Assembly (NCBI GenBank): GCA_000708835.1
Contig: DF236985.1
Span: 62,001-126,000 of the forward strand
Reading direction: 5' to 3'
DNA: 64,000 bases
Source of the DNA: Klebsormidium nitens
Taxonomy: Eukaryota > Plantae > Klebsormidiophyceae
The position numbers and the translations under genes were made by a program. The notes under the pieces were generated by a model. That model was given only the letters and a program-made list of their open reading frames with translations, was not told the origin of the DNA and ran no database searches. Below are positions 41-12,051 of the stretch, one piece after another. Position 1 is the stretch's first letter; each line of letters opens with the position of its first letter.

Positions 41-525
41 CTACTCCCGTTCTCGGCAGAATGGCTTGTGCTCTGGCCAGGCGTTGACTTGACATTCCTT
101 CGAGCAATCTGCAAACGAAAGGTCTGATAAGTAGCCCATTCAACGTACAAGTCGCGGGGGCGTGCCATTAAGAGGGCCATCAACTTGATCAACCCAACTC
201 GTATATTATGCCTCTACGTATCAAGTGAAGCAGCACGTGGTACTGCTCTAGGCCTCGAAAGCAAATCTCTCGCGACCCTTTTAGTCCACCTCAGCTTTCC
301 AAGCAGGCCAAGCCATGGATCGCTTTGAAAAGACGGAAGGCTCTGCAGAACACACACTTCTTTCAACAGACTAGCTGAGAAGCCAAGCCAAGATCAACTC
401 AAAGCGGAGCTCCGCCGCCGTACTCACAGCGCATCTCGCGACACCGTCCGCAGGTCCGGAACTTCAGCCCCGGCCCCTCCTTCTTGTCGCAGGCGCGCGC
501 GCTCTCCAGGCCGCGGTTGCACAGA
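41..525 (-). other. C-terminal MYND-type zinc finger
   Basis: C-x9-C..CGRC-x4-YCSKECQ-x3-W-x2-HK-x2-C, completed across a phase-1 intron (427-109). Confidence 0.88.
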
Positions 526-3500
526 GCCTCGACCCTCTTCGGGAGCTCTCCGATCGCCCCAGCCGCCGCGAGCGTGGCCGCCGTCCGTTTGTGGCCGTAC
601 TGCTTCGCGACGTCCAGGGGCGTCAGGCCGTTGACAGGTGGCGGCGTCGGGTTGGCCCCCTTCGCGAGCAGCATAGCCACGGCCTGCAGATATTGAGACG
701 AGATTTGAGCGAGAACTAGTGTCGGGAATTGCCGAGGACGTGTATTTTGGCATAGTGTGCGACTGGTTTGAGGCAAGCGACTGGAAGGGAAGGAAAAGCA
801 AGGTTTCTCTACTTCCTGTACGAAAGGTCCCTTTTTGGAAGCTTCAGGTCGAGCTGGCACATCCATTTCGCGATCGAAAAAGGCCAGGTTTTTGACAGGG
901 CTGTGTCACTATCTCGACGAAATCTCGGCCAGGATTCCCCATCTTGAGCTTAATATAACGGTGACTTCAAACAGGTAATAAGGATGACGGCTATCGAGAT
1001 TGTGTTTGAGCAGATATTTGGCCCTAAACTATGCGCTGAGGAAGCCAACGTGGGGCCGCAAAATGCCCAGACTCCAAAGAACCTTCGGCTCCGAACTAGC
1101 CCCGGCTCACCTCCACTTGGCCCAGCTCCGCAGCCTTGAACAGCGCGGTGGCGCCGTCCCGGTGCTGGCTCTCGTCCGCGCGCGCACCGCTCTCGATCAG
1201 CTGGTCGACGACAGCGGCCCACCCGTACTGGGCTGCGATCGTCAGCGGGCTGCGGCCGCGGTTGTCCGGCTTGTTGACCGCCTTCGCGAGGCCCTGCTGA
1301 CCGCCGCTCTCCCGAATGCGCGCGAGCGCGAGCGCGCACAGCTCCGAGCTGCCGACTTGCGCGATGCTGAGAGAAGGAGAGACATGGACAATTAGAATTG
1401 GCTTCTCCTTTCTGAAAACCAGATGGGTCGTGTATTGGACAGAGGAACAGGTTAGGCAGTCAGACCGTTTCGAAAAGGAGACAGGTCAAAAACTGAAGCT
1501 GTTTTACGTGGCTTTGAGCTGGGCCCTACAACCGAACACGAACTCGCCATTAAGTAGAAGCAATACATTTATAGAGCAGTCTGCGGAGATGTCTCGACAA
1601 CGGCTTCCAAAATCTTTCAAGTCAATAATTCATATTTGTTGTTGCGTCCATGAAGGGGTTCAGACGATACTCACACATGGAGAGCATTCAGCCCGTCTTT
1701 CGTCGGGTAGTCCGCGCGCGCACCGCTCTGGAGCAAAAAGCTGGCCAACTGCAGCCTGCCTTGCAGGAGGGCGTGCATCAGGGCGGTGCAGCCGTCAGCG
1801 TCCCTGTAATGAAAAGAGAGCTTATCAAGAGGAACATCTTTTTTCGTACAACTTCCACTGCGAGTATCCTCTTCAGCCTCCAGATTAGTTCCTGGCGTCT
1901 ACTGGCTGACAAAGCTTCTGGAAAGTCGCTCGTATTACAAACAAACAGGCCACCCTGATCCAGACTTCGGAACGATTCTTTCTCCCGCCATCTTACAGCG
2001 ATTGGTAGAGCCCGATCTGATATCTTTTTCTGAGTTGAACAATAGTGGGGGAGTCGAAGCTGTTTCTTACCGAGCGTCAACCCCTTTCGCAGGCAGGCGC
2101 CCGATCAGGCCCTTCGCTAGCTCGGCCAGCGCTTCTTCCCGCTCCTCCTTCGGTACGTCGCCCAACCGTTCGTCTTCCGCCTGCGCACCGCCCAAGAAGA
2201 GCTCGTCCCACTCCTCCTGCGCCCCATTTCCGCTCGATTCCGCCGTCTGTTCCGGCACCACCGGAACGGACTTCTCTTCCGGCTCAGTCGGCTGCCGCGG
2301 CCCCTCTTCGTCGCTGGACGATTCGCTTGCGGCCGGCGACTCGACTTCTAGCAGCGCAAACCCGCCCGTCTTCTTTTCGTCACCGTTGCCTGCGGCTGCA
2401 TTCCGCTTTCCGCTCGTCTCATCCTTCCGCGTTCCGTCCGTCTCAGCCCCCTTCTGCTTTCCGTGCGCTTTCTCGGCGTTCCCCCTGCTCGCTTCCGCTG
2501 CCGGCCACCATTTCAGCGGAGTGTCGACCCGAATGCGCCCGGTCTGGGCCACCCTCCTGTTTGCTTCGTCCTTGGGCTGGGGTGCCTTTGGAGGAACAGG
2601 TCTTGGGGCTATCCCTTTGGTCTCTCTGACACGTGTCAGCACCCGGATTGCTGCGGTTTCAGCGTGCGGGTCCGCGGGCGCCGGGGTTCCGGGATCCGGG
2701 AGTTGCGGCTCCGTTTCGGTCGGGAGATGTTCCGGCGTCGGGACGGCCAGTGTATCCCAGTCAACGAAGTTGGTAGGCTCTGCTGACGCGGTTTGGGGGA
2801 TTGGTTCTTCTGGCGCCGGCAGAGGGGGCGGCGGGGCAGCCTTGATGGCCTCGGCCTTGAAGACCTGGAGCATCTCGAGCCCTTGCTCAAATGGCACCTG
2901 GCAAGGACAGCAAAACGGAGCGGTCAATTTTTGGAACACTTGGGTACCATTTCAATTGAAGCTGTCGACTTCATTGAAGGGCGTCACCTGCATCCACCAG
3001 CCTGTTTGGAAGTACTGGATTTGAGAGTCCCCGGGGCCCTACTCGTAAATGCATGCATAAACGATAAAAATGCATGCAAGCACAATGTCTAACTTGCTTC
3101 CAGTATTCCGGTTCACGGACATTGACGGAAAGATCAACCTAAGGATTGAAATGTTGTGAAACTTGACTTGCTGCACGACACGATCGATCTAAAGCTAGAA
3201 GGAGCTTACGAAGCAAGGACATAGCGGCCTTTATTGCGGCAGCAAACACGTACTTCAAAAGCAGCTCAAAATTCAACTGAATACTGTTAGTTCCTACCTC
3301 CTGCATGTCCCGGCTGACGGTTACCGGCTTCCGGTCGTTGTTTGTCAGCAGAATGTGCTCCAGAAGTGTGCCCGGGACGTCTACCACCAGGTGCCACTTG
3401 ACGGGGAAGTGCCCGCCCCAGGGACTCTCCTGCCAGATGTCGAGCGCCTCGTCTTTCACACGACCCGTCTGCAGACAGCAGAAAAAGCTCAATTCAATGA

Positions 3501-6500
3501 AACTTTATTGCTTCGAAATCATTGAAAAATTCGTTTGCCAATCGAACACTCGCACCCAGAAAATAGCCCCAGAATCTGCTGAGTAGATGCAGCGCGCAGG
3601 TATGTTCAGCGTCCAAGAAAGCGAGACATTTGTGATAGCTTCAAGGCCAATAAGTGACGCTGATCTATGACAGGATAGCGAAAGTGGTTCAGCTGTCAGC
3701 TAAGCCTTTTAGATTGGCAGATACGATGTAACTTTTGCAGCGGTCTTCACCATCTCTGCCACTCCGCAGAAGACCCCGCTGGCGTTCACCGTCAGGAACA
3801 GGTACAGCGGTCCCGCGCCCTCCCCCTCCTGCAGCCTCCGGTACGCCATGTCCATCTTCTTGTTCCCCGTTCTAGTTACGCTCGTCCACGCCGAATGCTC
3901 CAGGCTGTTCTCCAAATCCTCCCTGCTGTTCCCGATCGCGACGAAGAACCGGGCGAACGGCGGGCTGTCGGCGAAATCTACCGGGTTTGTTTCCCCCCGC
4001 CTCGGAGCCGGCTTCTCCCCGACCTTCTTGCCGGCCTTCGCGCGGCCGCGCCGCGCGGCAGCCTCCGCGCGCTCCGCCTCCGCGCGCTGCTGGCGGACTC
4101 GCTCCTCCCAGTCCCGGAACTTGACGTGGTCCGCCAGGATCTGGCGCTCCTTCTCGAGCCTGCGCGCGCGCGCGCGCGCCTCCTCGTCGGGCGGCGGCCC
4201 CGCGGGTCTGACCGGCAGCTGACCCTTCTTGGCGGGGGCATCTACCTGGGCGCTGGTCGGGGGAAGTTCCCAGAACTGGGGTTCTTCAGCTTCGCTAAAA
4301 CCGTCTTCCGACCCATTCATCCTGCCCTGTTGAGACCCCGGCATCCGGTTGGACGCCCGTGCTTCTGCCGCTTCTTGGACCCGGTGCGTCCTGCCCGGCG
4401 GGCCCTTCTCGGTTGGTAGGGAAGTTTTGACGGCTTTGGGCGGGGGAGCAGCAAACTGACCGGGGCCCGGAACCCAGCCCCGGGCTTCGTACACCGCCGG
4501 GGTCCTGGGCCTGAGGAGCATGTTCCTGGATAGGCATGTGATTGCGTCAGATGGGCAGCATTTTGACGAAGAATCGAGCTCCTCCTTCGTTGTCTAAATA
4601 AGACTTTCTGCTTAGAATACAATTTAACAAGTCGGCAATTGAAACCCTGAGCAAGGATCAAAAATGCTGATTCCAGGGCGCCTGAAGTATGAAACAAACA
4701 GATAAGATGAAAGGACACGAAATGTACGATAAAAAGAAAGAGTAACCCTGTGAATGCAAAGTGTACCTTCAAAACTCGCTATGAACTTTTAAACGGTGGG
4801 GAACGTTTCAAGCTGTCATGTGGAAGAGGAATTCAGCAAAAGGTAGCTCGACTATCTTTTGTGAAGAGTTTTCAACTGGCCCCTGCATGCGAACTGCACT
4901 GGAAACAAGATTTACTGAAACGCACCTGAACGGGGCTCTGTCCTTCTTAAATAGCAGCAGTGCGTCCATGGCCGCGTCCTCGTCCTTCAGGCACATGAAC
5001 GCCGCCCCCTCGATTCGAACGCCGTCTCTAGTTGTGAGGGTGCGCGAGTTGATCAGCCGGATGGACATAACCTTGAGCCCTAGGTTTCTGAAATGCTCCC
5101 ACAGCTTCTTCTCGGTAAAGAGCTTCTCTGGAATGTTTCCCACCCAGATAGTCCTCCGCTGGAGTTCTTCCTCGCTCAGCGGTCCGGTCTTCTCTTCTCT
5201 TTTCCCCACCGGTACTGCAGCCGCGTTGCCCTCTTCACCCTTTTCCCCTTCTGCCCACCCCTTATCTTCGATCGGCTCCTCGATTCCCTCCTCCTTTCCT
5301 GCCCCACCTTGCTCTTTCTCATCCGGTTTCTCCGCAGCAGTCCATCCGGTATCGGTTCCCCCCTCTCTCGCTTCCTCCTCTCCGTTCCCTGTAGCTATCT
5401 GGCGAACGGCCGCTCTCACAGCCGCAACAAAGCCGCCTTCTTCTTCACATGGTGCGCTCTCAGTTCCCTCCACGCGCGCTTCGGCTTCTTCTTGCTGCTC
5501 CCCGGTAGAGACTTCTCCCCCCCCTCTACCAGGCAACGCCCGTCCCGCCATTGGAGCAGCCGCCTGACTGGAGGGCCCTTCCGACTGGTCCTCGGTGGAC
5601 CACTTGTCGTCGTTGTTGTCGAAAACCGAGCTAGTCGCCGACTCGTAGCCTTCCTCGTCTGAGAGACTCTCCCGGGGGCTCTTTACGCTCAGGGAGCTCT
5701 TCACCGACTCGATGGGCGAGGCCTCGGTGCTCAGGCTAACCGGCGACGCGCGTGAATGCGCGCGCTGGCCGCTGGGCGTACTGGGCAGGGTTTCGGGCGT
5801 TGGGGTCCGGCTGGAGGTCGCACTCTGGTCTTCACCCACCGGGCGCCATTCTTGACTCTGCGGGGGAGTCGAATTGCGCCTGCCCAGACCCCCCGGTTCG
5901 TGCAGAACTGCGCGCTCGCGCGCGGTGCCTGGCCTAGGAGAGCTAACTCGATCCGCTTCCTCAAACTGCCCCGGTCCCACAAACCTCTCCCCTACCCTTC
6001 CGGAACTTCCTCTTTTCAGTCCCTTAGATTGAGTTGCAGGGCCGGGCTTCTGGTTGAAGTTTCGTTGACCGAGAGCTTGCGGAGGGCCCCGGTTCTGGCT
6101 GGCTATCCCCTGCTCAGCTTCGACCCACGTCCGGTCGTAGTATCCGCCGCCGCTCTCTAAGTCGGTGATGAATTGCTTCTGAGAATAGCGCTTGCCCTTG
6201 CGGGTTGCCCTCCCCACCTCCTCGACGTCAGAGGCCTCCTCGTCTTCGATCTCGTGCGGGGCGGTTATCCTGACTGCTTTGGGTTTGCTTTCTACCGGTT
6301 GCGCCGGCTGCGGAGCCGGTCTTTCAACCACCGGCCTGCCCTGCCGCTGGTTCGCCCCGGGCTTCCTGAGCTTCCTCAACCGGGCGAACTCCTCGGCTTC
6401 GCTGTCATCTTCCTCAAGATCATCTGGCGCCACAATCCCCCCAGCGTTCCCCGCTCCTGGCCACCGGGACGGCCCACTCTGGACGTGCTCGTGCGCCGAG

Positions 6501-9500
6501 CCCCCGGTTGTCGGCCGGTTCACATTCCAACCGGAAGGTTCGCTCTGGGTGCTCCCGTGGGCGGAATCTCCGGTCGGGGGACGATCACCGTGCGCCCCAC
6601 CCAGCGCCAAGCGCGCGGCCGCCCTGCTCCGCTCGGCAAGGCCCGCGAACATCGTCGCGGACGCGCCCATCGCGGCCGCGCGAAAGGCGGTCCTCTCGCC
6701 GTCGGCCCGCGTCGCAACCTCCGCCTCCACAGCCTTGTTCTGGGGCACGTGCCCCGTCTGGATCACTCTCCCGGTCGCGTGCTCGGTTCCCTCCGTTTCT
6801 GGAGGCTGGGGACTGCTATCTTGTAGCTCTTCGGCTTCTTTCAGCACGTCCGGAAGGCTCGGGAGATCGTCTTCACTCTGCTCGACCATCTCGCTCCACT
6901 GTCCACTTTTGGGCGTCTTCGGACTCTTGAGTGGCTCCACCGGTGCTTCTTGCCGCCGCCCGTTTGATTTCGCGAGGGGAGCAAAGACTTGCGCGCCCTT
7001 GTCTCCATCGTCGAGCAACAGCCTGCCGGGTTTACCTTGGCGCCTTTCGGGACTACTTGGGTTACTTTCAGAGCCCCGCCTCTCTTTCGAGCTTTGCCTC
7101 TTCAGCTGCACGAGAGCGCCCTCGAAAATTATTGACCCCCTCTCTCTGGCACTCCCTGTTCCCGCTTCTTCCCATTCCTTAGGGGGCAATGAACCGCTCA
7201 GCTTGCTTCGCAACACCGCCCTATCCAGCTCCCCCGGTCCCTCCTCTCCTTCCGACTGATGAGAGATTCCCCACCGTCCCGTCAACCGCTCTTCCGCTTC
7301 TTTCCTCCTTTTCTCCCAGACGTTTTCTCTCTGTAAGTCCTCCGCCCGCCTGGTACCGTCTCTTCCCCTCGGGGCTTCCGACTGGTCGGGGGACTCCTCC
7401 GGGGCGAAAACCTCCGGCTTCGACCAGGCCTTTATCTTCACCTTCTCCAGCTCCGCCTTCTTCGCCTTGAAAGCCTCCTGTATCACCGCGCGCGCGAGCC
7501 GCTCCCCCGGTTTCTCGCCTTTTCCGAACTCCATCTGAGGGCCCACCTTCACTTTCCAGTCATCTTCCGACGGTGGGAGTTGCTGCCGCCCGGTCTTCAT
7601 CTTCTGGGGGATCCCTCCAACAAACTTCCCGTCCGCCTCGAGCTCCTCCCAGGTCTTTTCCGAGTCGGGCTTTAGAAGAGGCTCTCCCCGTGCAGCCTTG
7701 GCCTGCATCTCATCGAAAAGCTCCTCCCAGGTCTTTTCGCGGGCCTCCTTTGCCTCTCTCCCCGCCGGAGCTTCTCCACCGTCTTCCGCCTTCCGGTCCG
7801 GTTCCGCGGAGCCGCTTTCCTCCCCGTTAGCCGTCGCCAAGCCTAGCATCTCCTTCCAGAAGTCTGGACCTACTACCGACGCTTCAGAGACCTCAGAATG
7901 TTCCAAAGACTGCCCCGGTTGCGCTTCAATTTTAGCTGCGACTTCCAGCTTCCCGGCTTTAGACAGACTCTGCCGTTCCGCTCCTCCGCTCTGACCCTCG
8001 TCCGTTCCGCCAGAGCCGCCACCAATGAGAACTTTTAGCAGGTCGTCTATCTCACCCTCTCCTCCGCCCATCTCCCGGCTTCGACTGGAAGAGCCGTTCT
8101 CCGTCTTTCGGTGCATCTCGAATCCTGGCGGAGGCCCCAGCTTTGGAGTGAACCGCGTCGGCGGCCGCGACGCTTCTTTGCTGACTTCATCGCCCCTGGG
8201 TTCACCGAAGGACAGCTTCACACCCTCAGGTTTTCCGAAGTGGGGAAGAAGCATCGACAGGACCGACGAGGGGATGCCTCCGCTGGATGTTCTCTCCGCC
8301 TCCGGTTGCGTGTCTGCGGTCTTTTGCGTTTCACGGCTGGCCACTTCCGCTGTTACTTCGCTTCCCCGCTCCGGATTGCTGACGTCCGCGTCAGCGTCAG
8401 CATCAACGCTGCGAGTCTCCTCAGCAGCTTCTCCGCCCGCGAAGTCCTTTGATGGCAGCTCCGGCTTGTTGGTCACGTCGGTAGGCTCAAGTTGTGAAGC
8501 TTCTGACGAACCGTTTCGGCTCTCCTCTTCGGACTTTGACGTCATTTCAGCTTCTGGCTGCAGCCCAAAGTCGCTGGCTGCTTCGACGCCTCCTTCGCTA
8601 AGTTCTCTCAGACTGGATGCGACCGGACTCTCGATTTCAGTCTCTTCTGCAGCTTCTGCGGTTTGCCCTTCCGAAGGAACCACATCCGCTTTAGCAGCCG
8701 CCCCCGGTTCTGCCTGAGCGCTGGAAGGCTTCTCGTCCTCCTTTTCGATGCTGGGCCCCTCTGCGACTTCGCTTCCGGAACCGCTCCCTTCCAAACGATC
8801 CTCACCCTGCTCCTCCTCTTTGCGCGGTTGCTTTCTAACTTCCAGCTCCTCCTCCCCTTTTTCTTGTGCCGAACCCGCTTCTTCAGTTTCCCGTCCGTCC
8901 GCATCTGCTTCCCCATCCGCTTCAGTCTGTTCCTTAATTTCTTCTGAACCTTCTTGCGACTCCAAAACGACCTCCGCCTCCACCTGCTGGTTCGAGCTGC
9001 AATCTCCCGACGGCTTTGACCGAGCGTCTGACTCTTCTGAGCTTCCCGAACATTCCGCCCGCTCCGCCCCAACCTCAGGCGCTGCCTCTGCTCCCCCTTC
9101 CCGAACAGCTGCCCTTTCTTCTTCTAGGCTGTTTTCACTCTCCGGTGGACTTTCTTTGGCTTCTTCGACCTGGGCGCTTCTTTGCTCCTCCTTCGAAGAC
9201 GCTTCCACAATCTTGACGTCTTCCTTTGTACCCTCTTCCGGCAGGTCTGGCGCGCCCTCTACCCGGGCTTCAACCGAACCTTCGGAGCTCTCAATTGCTG
9301 CGTCCTCTTTGCCCTCGATCTCACCTGTCACACTCTCCTTTCCGACACATTGGTTCGCAGACGCCTCTGAGTTCTCTACGGATGCTTTCTCCGCCGGGAG
9401 AATGTCCGTTTCCCCCATCGCCGTAACTTCGACGACTGCTTGGGCAGACTCCGAAGCTGCATCGCCCCCCCGGTCAGATTCCGTTCTGTCACTTTCCGTT

Positions 9501-12051
9501 TCTCTCTCCTGCTGTTCCGTAGCCATTTTCTCCGCTCCATCCAGCAACGTTTCTTCCCCAGCGGCAACTTCAGAAGCGGTCGCGTCCTCAGCGTCACCAT
9601 CAGACGCCCCTTGAGGTTCTTGACTTGTTTCCGCTTTCTGGCTATCTGTTACCGAATCAGCCGGCTTCTCCCTCTCCAGAACCTCTTCGTCCTCTTCAGG
9701 CTCGCTCTTGGCCTCAGACTTCCCCCCTGGAGACTCAGCAGCTTCCGTCGGCGCGCCATTGTCCTTCCCCTCTGCATCCGGTTCCGGCGCTCCGTTCACA
9801 GCCTCAGTTGATTCCTCTCCGTCTGCGCTGGCGAAAGCGACCAGATCTGTAGCGCTTGGTTCCTTCGTGACACTCCTCCCACTCCAGCCAGTGCTGTCGC
9901 TGTCAGCTTCTGCTTCTTCTGATCTGGCTTGGCCTTCTTCGACCTCGCTGCCCTCTTCGCTCAGCGCCTCCAGGGTAGGACGCCTCTGCCACGTTTCACG
10001 CCTGGCAGAGTCTGTGGGGACCTCTGGGGTTACGGCTGCTCGGGACTTGGGCAACTCCGTCTGGAAAAAAATGTGGGTAAGTTTCACTCTTTGTATCCAG
10101 CCTCTCAGACTCTCAAGTTCCAATAAAGCACATTTCCTTCTGACAAGAATCTCTGAGGGTCGTTTCCTCTTCACACGCTTCAGGGCACGCAAGTTGAGCT
10201 CAACTTTACTCGGTTTGAGATTACTTTTCGGGTCGAAATGCAAACATTAGCGCTTCTCGCATACAATCTTGAATCTTTCACCTGCACGCACGTCCTTTCA
10301 GCCGAATCTCTTTTGATCGCTTCAAAGCTTCTCTGCGCCCCGCGAAACTGATCTTCGTTGTAAAGTGGTCCGCATATTCCAAGAAAGAACGGTGTACTTT
10401 CAAAAGATACGAGCTACAGATCTTTGATCAGATTGAGAACGATAAAGTGGTACCAGTAAGCTGACCCTTCTCACCTGCATGTTCGACTGCAGTTCACGAG
10501 ACATGATCCGCAGCTTCGTAGAGTCGACCTTCGGGAGAGCTCTCTGGACCGGCGCTGGCCTTGGCGGAGGCTGCTGGGGTCTTTGAAACCACATGTTCTG
10601 CGGTCTAGGAGTGAAGTACTGGGGTCCACGAGGTGCCAGAGGAGGCCGCTGATCAGTTCCTGGCATCCTGCCACGTGGAAACTGCTGATTTGCCACAAAC
10701 GGAGGTGCAGCAGGGGAAAGATGCGGCCTGGGAGGCCTCTGGAACTGTCCGTACGGACCGAACTGAGGCGCTTGGAAAGGAGCGTTGAACTGGGGTGCTT
10801 GCGCGGGGGTGTTGAACTGGGGTGCTTCAGAGGGGGGCCATTGTGGTGCCAAAGGCGGCCGCTGCCCTCGAGCAGGAGGCGGCTGTTGAGGGTGACGTTG
10901 CCAGTCAGGGGGGTAGGCTTCGCCAGCCATCTGGGGGGGGTGGTTGAACTGCGGCTGCGGCTGTTGCTGCGGCCGCGGTGGAATCTGGGACGGAGGAGAC
11001 CAGCTGGCTGCCGAAGGGTTTAAGCCGGGGTTTGGGGGCTGGTTTGGGGGCTGGGTGGCTGTAGACTTTGGCTGCTGCTCAGGCTGCGCCTCTGGAGGGT
11101 TTTGGGCCGGGCTGGAGGGCTCCGAAGCTTGCGTTGACGACGACGGAGAAGCCGGCTGGATCGGTAGTTGCATGAACGGGTTGAAGAAAGGGGAGGCCCC
11201 TGGCCAGCCGATGGGGATTCCCATGCCCGGCTGAAGTCCAGGGGTTGGGAAGAAGGGGGTTGGGAAGAAGGGGTACTGGTATCCGGACATGAACATCTGG
11301 AGAAAAGGAAGATTATCATTCAGCAGACCGAAGTTTACGAACTCTGGAAGACACCTGATCGTCATTGAAATCTGTCCAGCTGCTAGAGCAGAAGCGAAAG
11401 GTTCCGTGGTCTGCCAAGTGAGACTCGGAAAGCAAACCTCTTGTTGAAGCGTCTTTATCGCATCGATCGTGCTGCATCGAGATAATCCAGATTCTCATCC
11501 TAGAGAAGCAAAGGTTGTAGAGTAAAAGCCGAAAGGAACGTTATTCGCACGCAAACCCTTCTGCTTACCTGCGCCGGAAGTCCTGGCACAAGCCCTGGAT
11601 ACAAGCCAACCGGTGTCGATCTGCCGCTACCACCCTCCTCGTTCGCGGACGATGCTTCGCTGGATGCTTCACTCAAGTTGTAAGACGCGCCTCCAACGTT
11701 GTCATCTGCCACTTCAACGATTTCCCTGGAATACGCAGCCCGGCCATCTTCTGTGACAAATCCATTAGCCTCAGCAGCAGCAATTTCTCCAGGGCGCAGC
11801 TCTCCTTCGTAGGATCTGTCACCATTCTCCACTACCCCTCGATATTCCTCGACAGGACGGAGATGGTTGTCATAGACTGAGTTTGAGTACATCCTCCAGG
11901 ATCCCGCTTGCTGCCTGCTAGTTTCTTCGCTCGAAAAGACCCCGTTGGAAAAGTCCTCTGCAGAAGGCCGGACTCTTGATGGAAGTAGGTCTGGGTCAGC
12001 TTCGCTGCTCTGCTCGGCTTCTTCGTCATCAGCACCTTCTCTTGTAGCCAT
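41..12051 (-). CDS. Large multidomain RNA-binding protein: Pro/Gln-rich and acidic disordered region + RRM + YTH + ankyrin repeats + MYND zinc finger (10 exons, 2973 aa as modelled; 5' end uncertain)
   Basis: Hand-spliced exons (minus): 12051-11569, 11296-10475, 10060-4926, 4525-3751, 3468-3298, 2897-2071, 1803-1675, 1366-1111, 683-428, 108-41. All introns are GT-AG and phase-compatible; the total of 8922 nt is divisible by 3. Junctions rebuild motifs: APFR|NMLLRP (RRM end), GVAEM|TGRV..DIWQESPW and SRDMQE|VPFEQGLEMLQVFK (YTH), GVDAR|DADGCTALMHA and LH V|IAQ (ankyrin), CGRCREMR|YCSKECQVNAWPEHKPFC (MYND). Confidence 0.85.
520..2110 (-). other. Ankyrin repeats (about 5)
   Basis: DADGCTALMHA..LLQSGARAD; DGLNALHV; DNRGRSPLTIAAQYG..LIESGARAD; DGATALFKAAELG..LLAKGANP; NGLTPLDVAKQYGH. 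Confidence 0.9.
2850..3965 (-). other. YTH domain (YTHDF/ECT-like), spread over three exons
   Basis: FVAIGNSREDLENSLEHSAWTS..GNKKMDMAYRR..LYLFLTVNASGVFCGVAEM / DIWQESPWGGHFPVKWHLVVDVP..LEHILLTNNDRKPVTVSRDMQE / VPFEQGLEMLQVFK follows the YTHDF consensus (NGNKKLDAAY, SVNASGQFCGVAEM, FPVKW, NKPVTNSRDTQE). Confidence 0.93.
4926..5160 (-). other. RRM domain at the 3' end of the giant exon
   Basis: RRTIWVGNIP (RNP2-like) ... IEGAAFMCLKDEDAAMDAL (RNP1-like plus helix 2); the last strand continues into the next exon. Confidence 0.8.

Follow-up and report, generated by a model that had tools for sequence, protein, structure and literature searches.

An expressed YTHDF-type gene of Klebsormidium nitens encoding RRM-like, ankyrin and MYND domains

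Gene structure and transcript support

The window analyzed here is a stretch of 64,000 nucleotides from Klebsormidium nitens (assembly GCA_000708835.1, contig DF236985.1, positions 62,001 to 126,000 of the forward strand), and all coordinates refer to it. Positions 12051 to 41 of the minus strand are one expressed K. nitens gene, KFL_000360080, also named Kni DF3. Its coding sequence (41..12051, minus strand) has 10 exons and 9 GT-AG introns and encodes 2973 amino acids (aa) in the transcript-supported form. The product matches the GenBank entry 'hypothetical protein KFL_000360080 [Klebsormidium nitens]' (public model P0001) and is a YTHDF-type protein of roughly 2970 aa. From the N- to the C-terminus it contains a Pro/Gln (P/Q)-rich intrinsically disordered region (IDR) with PxLxP motifs, an acidic IDR of ~1600 aa, a divergent RRM-like domain, a conserved charged helical spacer, a YTH domain, a linker, about five ankyrin repeats (ANK), and a MYND finger.

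All exons lie on the minus strand. Exon 1 (12051-11569) is separated by intron 1 (11568-11297) from exon 2 (11296-10475), and the large exon 3 (10060-4926, 5135 nt) is followed by exons 4 (4525-3751), 5 (3468-3298), 6 (2897-2071), 7 (1803-1675), 8 (1366-1111), 9 (683-428), and 10 (108-41). The introns are 267-427 nt long, and GT..AG ends were found in 9 of 9. The spliced open reading frame (ORF) has its sole stop codon at the end. GC content is 0.54-0.72 in the exons compared with 0.42-0.51 in the introns, and the 5.1 kb of exon 3 contain no in-frame stop, versus 48 and 76 in the other two frames. Introns 1 and 2 were placed by their canonical splice sites, the drop in GC content, and the agreement with P0001.

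We compared the 6-kb 3' stretch of the gene with contigs of three public runs from one study (X1-X3). Seven 3' junctions, from 4926/4525 down to 428/108, were seen in contigs that lack the introns. The contig joints fall at 108/428, 682/1110, 1366/1675, 1802/2070, 2895/3296, 3468/3751, and 4524/4925, and all seven have CT..AC ends, which correspond to GT..AG on the minus strand. X1 record 2, a contig of 3964 nt, connects ankyrin exon 8 with exons 7, 6, 5, 4, and 3 and extends past position 6000. X2 record 3 spans exons 9 to 4, and exons 9 and 10 are joined in X1 record 1; the exon 3 stretch 4925-6000 is covered by contigs. A run of a second study has an overhang of 10 letters at 2070, the last nine of which match the end of exon 7. 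The gene is therefore spliced from the RRM-like domain through to the MYND finger. A preliminary description of this DNA had proposed a single gene fusion and quoted the junctions ...VDAR|DADGCTAL (2071/1803) and SRDMQE|VPFEQG (3298/2897). Both junctions are exact and are present in spliced contigs together with the join of RRM to YTH at 4926/4525, and the fusion is confirmed by these contigs and by a conserved ortholog. As that description also stated, junctions lie inside domains: three exons (4, 5, and 6) contribute to the YTH domain and two (9 and 10) to the MYND finger.

A short (GC)n/Ala-Arg coding microsatellite is present in exon 4 at 4165-4184 and draws 19-nt matches from unrelated contigs. 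The 255-letter 'loose ends' observed in all four runs are artefacts of this microsatellite and were dismissed as alternative joints.

The contigs also correct the annotation. P0001 has 2988 aa and is 99.5% identical to the 2973-aa model, the sole difference being a 15-aa insert inside an ankyrin repeat (1367..1411, minus strand, 45 nt) that is spliced out in the transcript contigs. The GenBank model takes an acceptor 45 nt upstream of 1366, whereas contigs of all three runs join 1366 to 1675. The junction given in the preliminary description is therefore the supported one. The ortholog also has an in-frame AG at the position of the upstream acceptor, but the inserted sequence is not conserved there. 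The transcript proof of seven junctions and the corrected exon-8 acceptor are new.

Conservation in a related alga

The ortholog lies on a 10.6-kb genomic Logan contig of a related alga (L002, run SRR23617307). In tblastn searches this contig matched the end of exon 3 with the RRM-like domain, both YTH pieces, the linker, three ankyrin exons, and the MYND exon, with the order kept. Nucleotide similarity to the window is restricted to the exons. GT..AG ends are present at homologous positions for all seven splice sites. Exons that differ in length between the two algae do so by multiples of three, and splicing yields an open frame. We calculated dN/dS per region between K. nitens and the ortholog by the Nei-Gojobori method. 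The values were 0.031 for the RRM-like domain, 0.08 for the MYND finger, 0.11 for the charged helix before the YTH domain, 0.118 for the YTH domain, 0.30 for the ankyrin repeats, 0.32 for the upstream IDR, and 0.42 for the linker between YTH and ANK. The kept order and splice sites, the open frame, and the low dN/dS indicate that the fusion is under purifying selection in the second alga as well, and thus kept by selection in two taxa.

Domain composition

The YTH domain (aa 2336-2475; 2859..3960, minus strand) is encoded by three exon pieces (3960-3751, 3468-3298, and 2897-2859). Pfam YTH (PF04146) matched with 112.2 bits against a cut-off of 22.1 and covered profile positions 1-135 of 135. 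Among structures in the PDB, the domain matched YTHDF3, YTHDF2, and YTHDF1 best (E 3e-35 to 2e-32), YTHDC2 with 4e-12, and YTHDC1 with 5e-8. By similarity, the domain is assigned to the YTHDF type and is closer to DF than to DC domains. The aromatic cage (W...W-x4-W) is intact: in the alignment, the YTHDF3 cage tryptophans have their counterparts in HSAW and W-QESP-W, both kept in the ortholog. In human YTHDF2 the cage residues are W432, W486, and W491. Kni DF3 also keeps an Asp at the D422 position and the SRD motif, as does the ortholog. The location of the domain at aa 2336-2475 of 2973 departs from the canonical DF layout, in which an N-terminal IDR and a C-terminal YTH are combined with no other folded domain.

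Just before the YTH domain there is a charged Arg/Glu/Ala-rich helical segment (aa 2255-2335; window ~3960-4200, minus strand), which is 93% identical in the ortholog with a dN/dS of 0.11. The constraint on this helix is as strong as that on the YTH domain, of which it may form an N-terminal extension; alternatively, it may be a coiled coil. The linker after the YTH domain (aa 2476-2737; 2071..2858, minus strand) is A/E/P-rich and 70% identical to the ortholog.

The RRM-like domain (aa ~2066-2160; 4484..5170, minus strand) spans intron 3 and is composed of 5170-4926 and 4525-4484. It is the weakest item of the architecture. The best PDB sequence match by phmmer was the RRM of Nop12 (E 2.3e-5), followed by RRMs of Prp24, SF3B4, CstF-64, CBP20, and PABP; among the PDB matches listed for the region, 16 of 18 are RRM-type proteins. 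Its neighbors in a protein language model are RRM_1 clusters (atlas feature score 0.90). A single-sequence AF2 model has the order b1-a1-b2-b3-a2 at a pLDDT of 67, and a Foldseek search of the PDB with this model returned RRM-type structures in at least 49 of the top 50 hits, with a TM-score by target of up to 0.70. Compared with the RNP1/RNP2 consensus, the RNP2 motif (IWVGNI) fits. The identity to the ortholog is 95.8%, and the region is the most constrained part of the protein. Despite a sub-threshold Pfam score, the domain looks real from the PDB sequence matches, the fold search, and the strong constraint. A 15-bit match to PF25701 ('RRM_YTH1') is far under the cut-off of 35 and was not taken as membership in a known RRM-YTH family.

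The ankyrin repeats (aa 2738-2912; 546..1803, minus strand) are encoded by exons 7 and 8 and the first half of exon 9. Manual reading of the sequence gives about five repeats, and Pfam matched Ank_4 (PF13637, 35.1 bits vs. a cut-off of 22.7), Ank_2 (PF12796, 35.1 vs. 27.3), and Ank (PF00023, 24.9 vs. 21.1). The MYND finger (aa ~2916-2970; 44..536, minus strand) is split by intron 9 into 536-428 and 108-44. It matched zf-MYND (PF01753) with 46.6 bits against 22.7, at profile positions 4-39 of 39. Its ligand pattern C-X12-CGRC-X5-C-X3-C-X7-H-X3-C is canonical, and 7 of the 8 zinc ligands are in C4-C2HC spacing. The nearest feature-space clusters of the ANK-MYND tail are ANKMY2-like proteins (0.96-0.97). 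We found no paralogous MYND, ANK, RRM, or YTH sequence within 10 kb downstream of the gene or in the rest of the window.

Ahead of the RRM-like domain lie two IDRs. Exons 1-2 (aa 1-435; 10475..12051, minus strand) encode an acidic start and then a P/Q-rich IDR (26% P, 15% Q), and exon 3 (4926..10060, minus strand) encodes ~1630 aa of acidic E/A/S/G-rich IDR with the RRM-like domain at its 3' end. Pfam detected no family in aa 1-440 or in the exon 3 IDR. Aa 1-435 contain seven PxLxP motifs, two of them at RPPLAP sites, compared with 0.57 expected from shuffling the segment, and this number was not attained in any of 2000 shuffles. Outside aa 1-435 the protein has no PxLxP enrichment, and the motif is rare in 150 other YTH-family proteins retrieved (median 0; 129 of 150 without it). 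This cluster of MYND-ligand-type motifs in the N-terminal IDR is a new observation. The MYND fingers of BS69 and DEAF-1 are established binders of PXLXP (PMC3555993, PMC4742278). The cluster suggests, as a hypothesis, a docking site in the IDR for the protein's own MYND finger or for other MYND proteins.

Distribution and previous records

We scanned 1.84 billion representative proteins with the YTH domain by phmmer without a word index. The scan gave 1603 matches, and the best 150 were inspected. The close ones among these were the protein itself and an ortholog fragment (P0084), and none of the 149 closest YTH representatives had a similar ANK-MYND or RRM in local phmmer searches. Ten long YTH matches scanned with Pfam had YTH only. 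Word-indexed searches with the YTH-to-MYND part among proteins of 360-1144 aa and of 1643-5229 aa listed no other protein with YTH, ANK, and MYND, giving ankyrin or YTH-only proteins instead, and in a search with the RRM region among proteins of 941-2994 aa only Kni DF3 itself matched. Within these searches, the architecture appears confined to Klebsormidium and a close relative.

Two of the retrieved YTH proteins have unusual architectures of their own. The best non-orthologous YTH match (P0002, 1077 aa) has two tandem YTH domains (Pfam 301 bits in 2 stretches). A Linum trigynum protein (P0192, 1716 aa) is of the TIR-NB-LRR immune-receptor type with an embedded YTH, possibly an integrated-decoy architecture.

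The exact protein was included as Kni DF3 in a study of plant YTHDF proteins (Flores-Tellez et al., PLoS Genet 2023; PMC10617740). In the supplementary alignments of that paper Kni DF3 begins with the same N-terminus and includes the RRM segment. The paper mentions additional folded domains in charophyte YTHDFs, and its S22 Fig shows the InterPro domains of Kni DF3; ankyrin, MYND, and RRM are not named in its main text. KFL_000360080 also carries precomputed Pfam matches to YTH, Ank, and zf-MYND. A literature search for YTH with MYND and ankyrin gave gene lists and no other paper linking YTH with ANK-MYND. The preliminary description had called the architecture lineage-specific and undescribed. 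The former holds for the 149 YTH representatives and the two word-indexed searches; the latter does not stand, since at the catalogue level the combination had already been reported. The protein is thus already known, an unusual but not a new find. New here are the evidence for the RRM-like domain and the result that no other protein with YTH, ANK, and MYND appeared in the searches run.

Discussion

We consider it probable that this one expressed YTHDF-type gene, with the domains described above, acts as a scaffold that reads N6-methyladenosine (m6A) rather than as a plain IDR-plus-YTH reader. The YTH domain, possibly aided by the RRM-like domain, would bind m6A-marked mRNA. The ANK-MYND tail would be a protein-docking module for proline-rich (PxLxP-type) partners or would mediate self-association, and the long acidic and P/Q-rich IDRs may modulate solubility.

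Several observations weigh against this interpretation. In the gene model, the start codon and introns 1 and 2 are predicted from the sequence, in agreement with the public model. Runs X1-X3 are presumed to be RNA, although contigs that lack introns and have canonical splice ends could hardly be anything else, and the contigs are compatible with shorter (minor) isoforms as well. For the RRM-like domain, Pfam RRM_1 scored 15.6 bits, below the threshold of 20.7, in an alignment limited to profile positions 1-34; the AF2 model has low confidence for strand beta4; and the RNP1 motif (EGAAFMCL) is degenerate, as it keeps the aromatic residue at position 5 and is without K/R at position 1 and without an aromatic residue at position 3. 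RNA binding by the RRM-like domain is therefore treated as putative. In the YTH domain, Ile and Asn align with K416 and Y418 of human YTHDF2, two beta1 residues in contact with RNA and m6A. The published analysis of plant YTHDFs describes beta1 and alpha1 of the Kni DF3 YTH as degenerated (PMC10617740). The first Cys pair of the MYND finger is C-X10-C and not C-X2-C, both Cys being conserved in the ortholog, and the single-sequence AF2 model of the ANK-MYND region (P0001:2797-2988) was uninformative, with a pLDDT of 52. Finally, coverage of the ortholog ends at aa 1841, so that the comparison excludes the PxLxP cluster.

The preliminary description had assigned two RNA-binding modules to the protein. 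In view of the degenerate RNP1 and the missing matches to K416 and Y418, this goes too far, and RNA and m6A binding are activities that we infer.

The same features could be read as a scaffold that works independently of m6A. Like that of fission-yeast Mmi1, the YTH domain would then no longer bind RNA with methyl specificity or high affinity; the RRM-like domain would be a pseudo-RRM for protein interactions, and the protein would act mainly through ANK-MYND and IDR contacts. The degenerated beta1 and alpha1 and the replaced K416 and Y418 equivalents agree with this, as do the degenerate RNP1 and a YTH score of just 112 bits where single-domain relatives reach 150-180 bits. However, the three cage tryptophans, the D422-matching Asp, and the SRD motif are kept, in the ortholog too, the YTH domain has a dN/dS of 0.12, and the RRM-like domain keeps RNP2 and an aromatic residue at position 5 of RNP1. 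We regard this explanation as unlikely. The protein might instead be a nuclear, chromatin-linked adaptor whose MYND finger recruits co-repressor-like partners, as those of ZMYND11, DEAF-1, and ETO do, and which couples nascent m6A RNA to transcriptional control and not to cytoplasmic mRNA fate. The best-studied MYND fingers do work in nuclear repressor complexes (PMC3555993, PMC4742278), and the basic charged helical spacer before the YTH domain could, by its composition, carry nuclear localization signals. But the YTH domain is of the cytoplasmic YTHDF type and not of the DC type, and the nearest feature neighbors of the ANK-MYND tail are ANKMY2-like proteins and not chromatin factors, so that a nuclear role seems quite improbable.

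A further alternative concerns the gene itself. Two genes could lie at the locus, one encoding the IDR and RRM-like domain and ending at a stop at 4808, the other encoding YTH-ANK-MYND and starting at an ATG at 4521, with the fusion an artefact of prediction or read-through. The exon-3 ORF can indeed continue for 39 codons beyond 4926 to this stop, and the in-frame ATG lies four bases into exon 4. Yet three runs have contigs with the 4925/4524 joint, flanked by 255 nt on either side. The splice sites are kept in the ortholog, where read-through hits a stop after two codons; the first 33 aa after the junction are 100% conserved; and the RRM-like block that spans the junction has a dN/dS of 0.03. 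The two-gene model was rejected on the spliced contigs and the conservation, which had largely refuted it already, and it is extremely improbable.

As an m6A-reader scaffold, Kni DF3 can be compared with several known systems. The usual description of YTHDF readers is that of a YTH domain joined to an IDR in which the effector function resides. With YTHDF/ECT readers such as human YTHDF1-3 and Arabidopsis ECT2 it shares the DF-type YTH, the intact Trp cage, and a long N-terminal IDR, part of which is rich in P/Q and aromatic residues. In contrast to these, its YTH is internal and not C-terminal, its IDR is ~2000 aa long and mostly acidic, and an RRM-like domain lies upstream and ANK-MYND downstream. 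The beta1/alpha1 contact residues are replaced, and the other sampled YTHDFs carry YTH only. The published survey groups Kni DF3 among the DFs (PMC10617740).

The ANK-MYND tail resembles the ANKMY2-like proteins of animals and fungi, in which ankyrin repeats are followed by a C-terminal MYND, a likeness based on language-model features only. Those proteins have 170-410 aa and no RNA-binding domain, and Kni DF3 differs from them by its C-X10-C first Cys pair. BS69/ZMYND11 and DEAF-1 have a C4-C2HC-type MYND that is a PXLXP-binding module (PMC3555993, PMC4742278) and that the finger of Kni DF3 resembles apart from the spacing of its first Cys pair, but they are chromatin readers, whereas Kni DF3 is a putative RNA reader. 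Precedents for a YTH inside multi-domain proteins are YTHDC2 (a helicase with ankyrin) and CPSF30-L (CCCH fingers and YTH). YTHDC2, too, combines ankyrin repeats with YTH. Both carry a DC-type YTH in helicase or CCCH contexts, whereas the YTH of Kni DF3 is DF-type and matched YTHDC2 only with E 4e-12.

A more specific mechanism can be proposed from the PxLxP cluster, although we hold it to be doubtful. The MYND finger might bind the protein's own N-terminal PxLxP cluster, in cis or between molecules, which would give a self-associating or autoinhibited YTHDF reader. Assembly on m6A mRNA would then proceed through a folded domain and short linear motifs and not through IDR stickiness alone, and the RRM-like domain would be a second contact with RNA or a partner protein. 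If true, reader multimerization in an early-diverging streptophyte would follow an alternative, lineage-specific route.

What this work adds in practice is a gene model validated by transcripts, with the exon-8 acceptor corrected, support for an RRM-like domain, and a defined hypothesis on MYND and PxLxP. The importance is modest, as Kni DF3 is one lineage-restricted paralog that was already catalogued. When an ECT2-like function of plants arose in streptophyte algae is left open in the published study (PMC10617740). In Kni DF3, an early-diverging streptophyte lineage has added RRM-like and ANK-MYND domains to a DF-type reader and has kept them under purifying selection, which makes the protein a natural test case for the rewiring of reader output by domain accretion.

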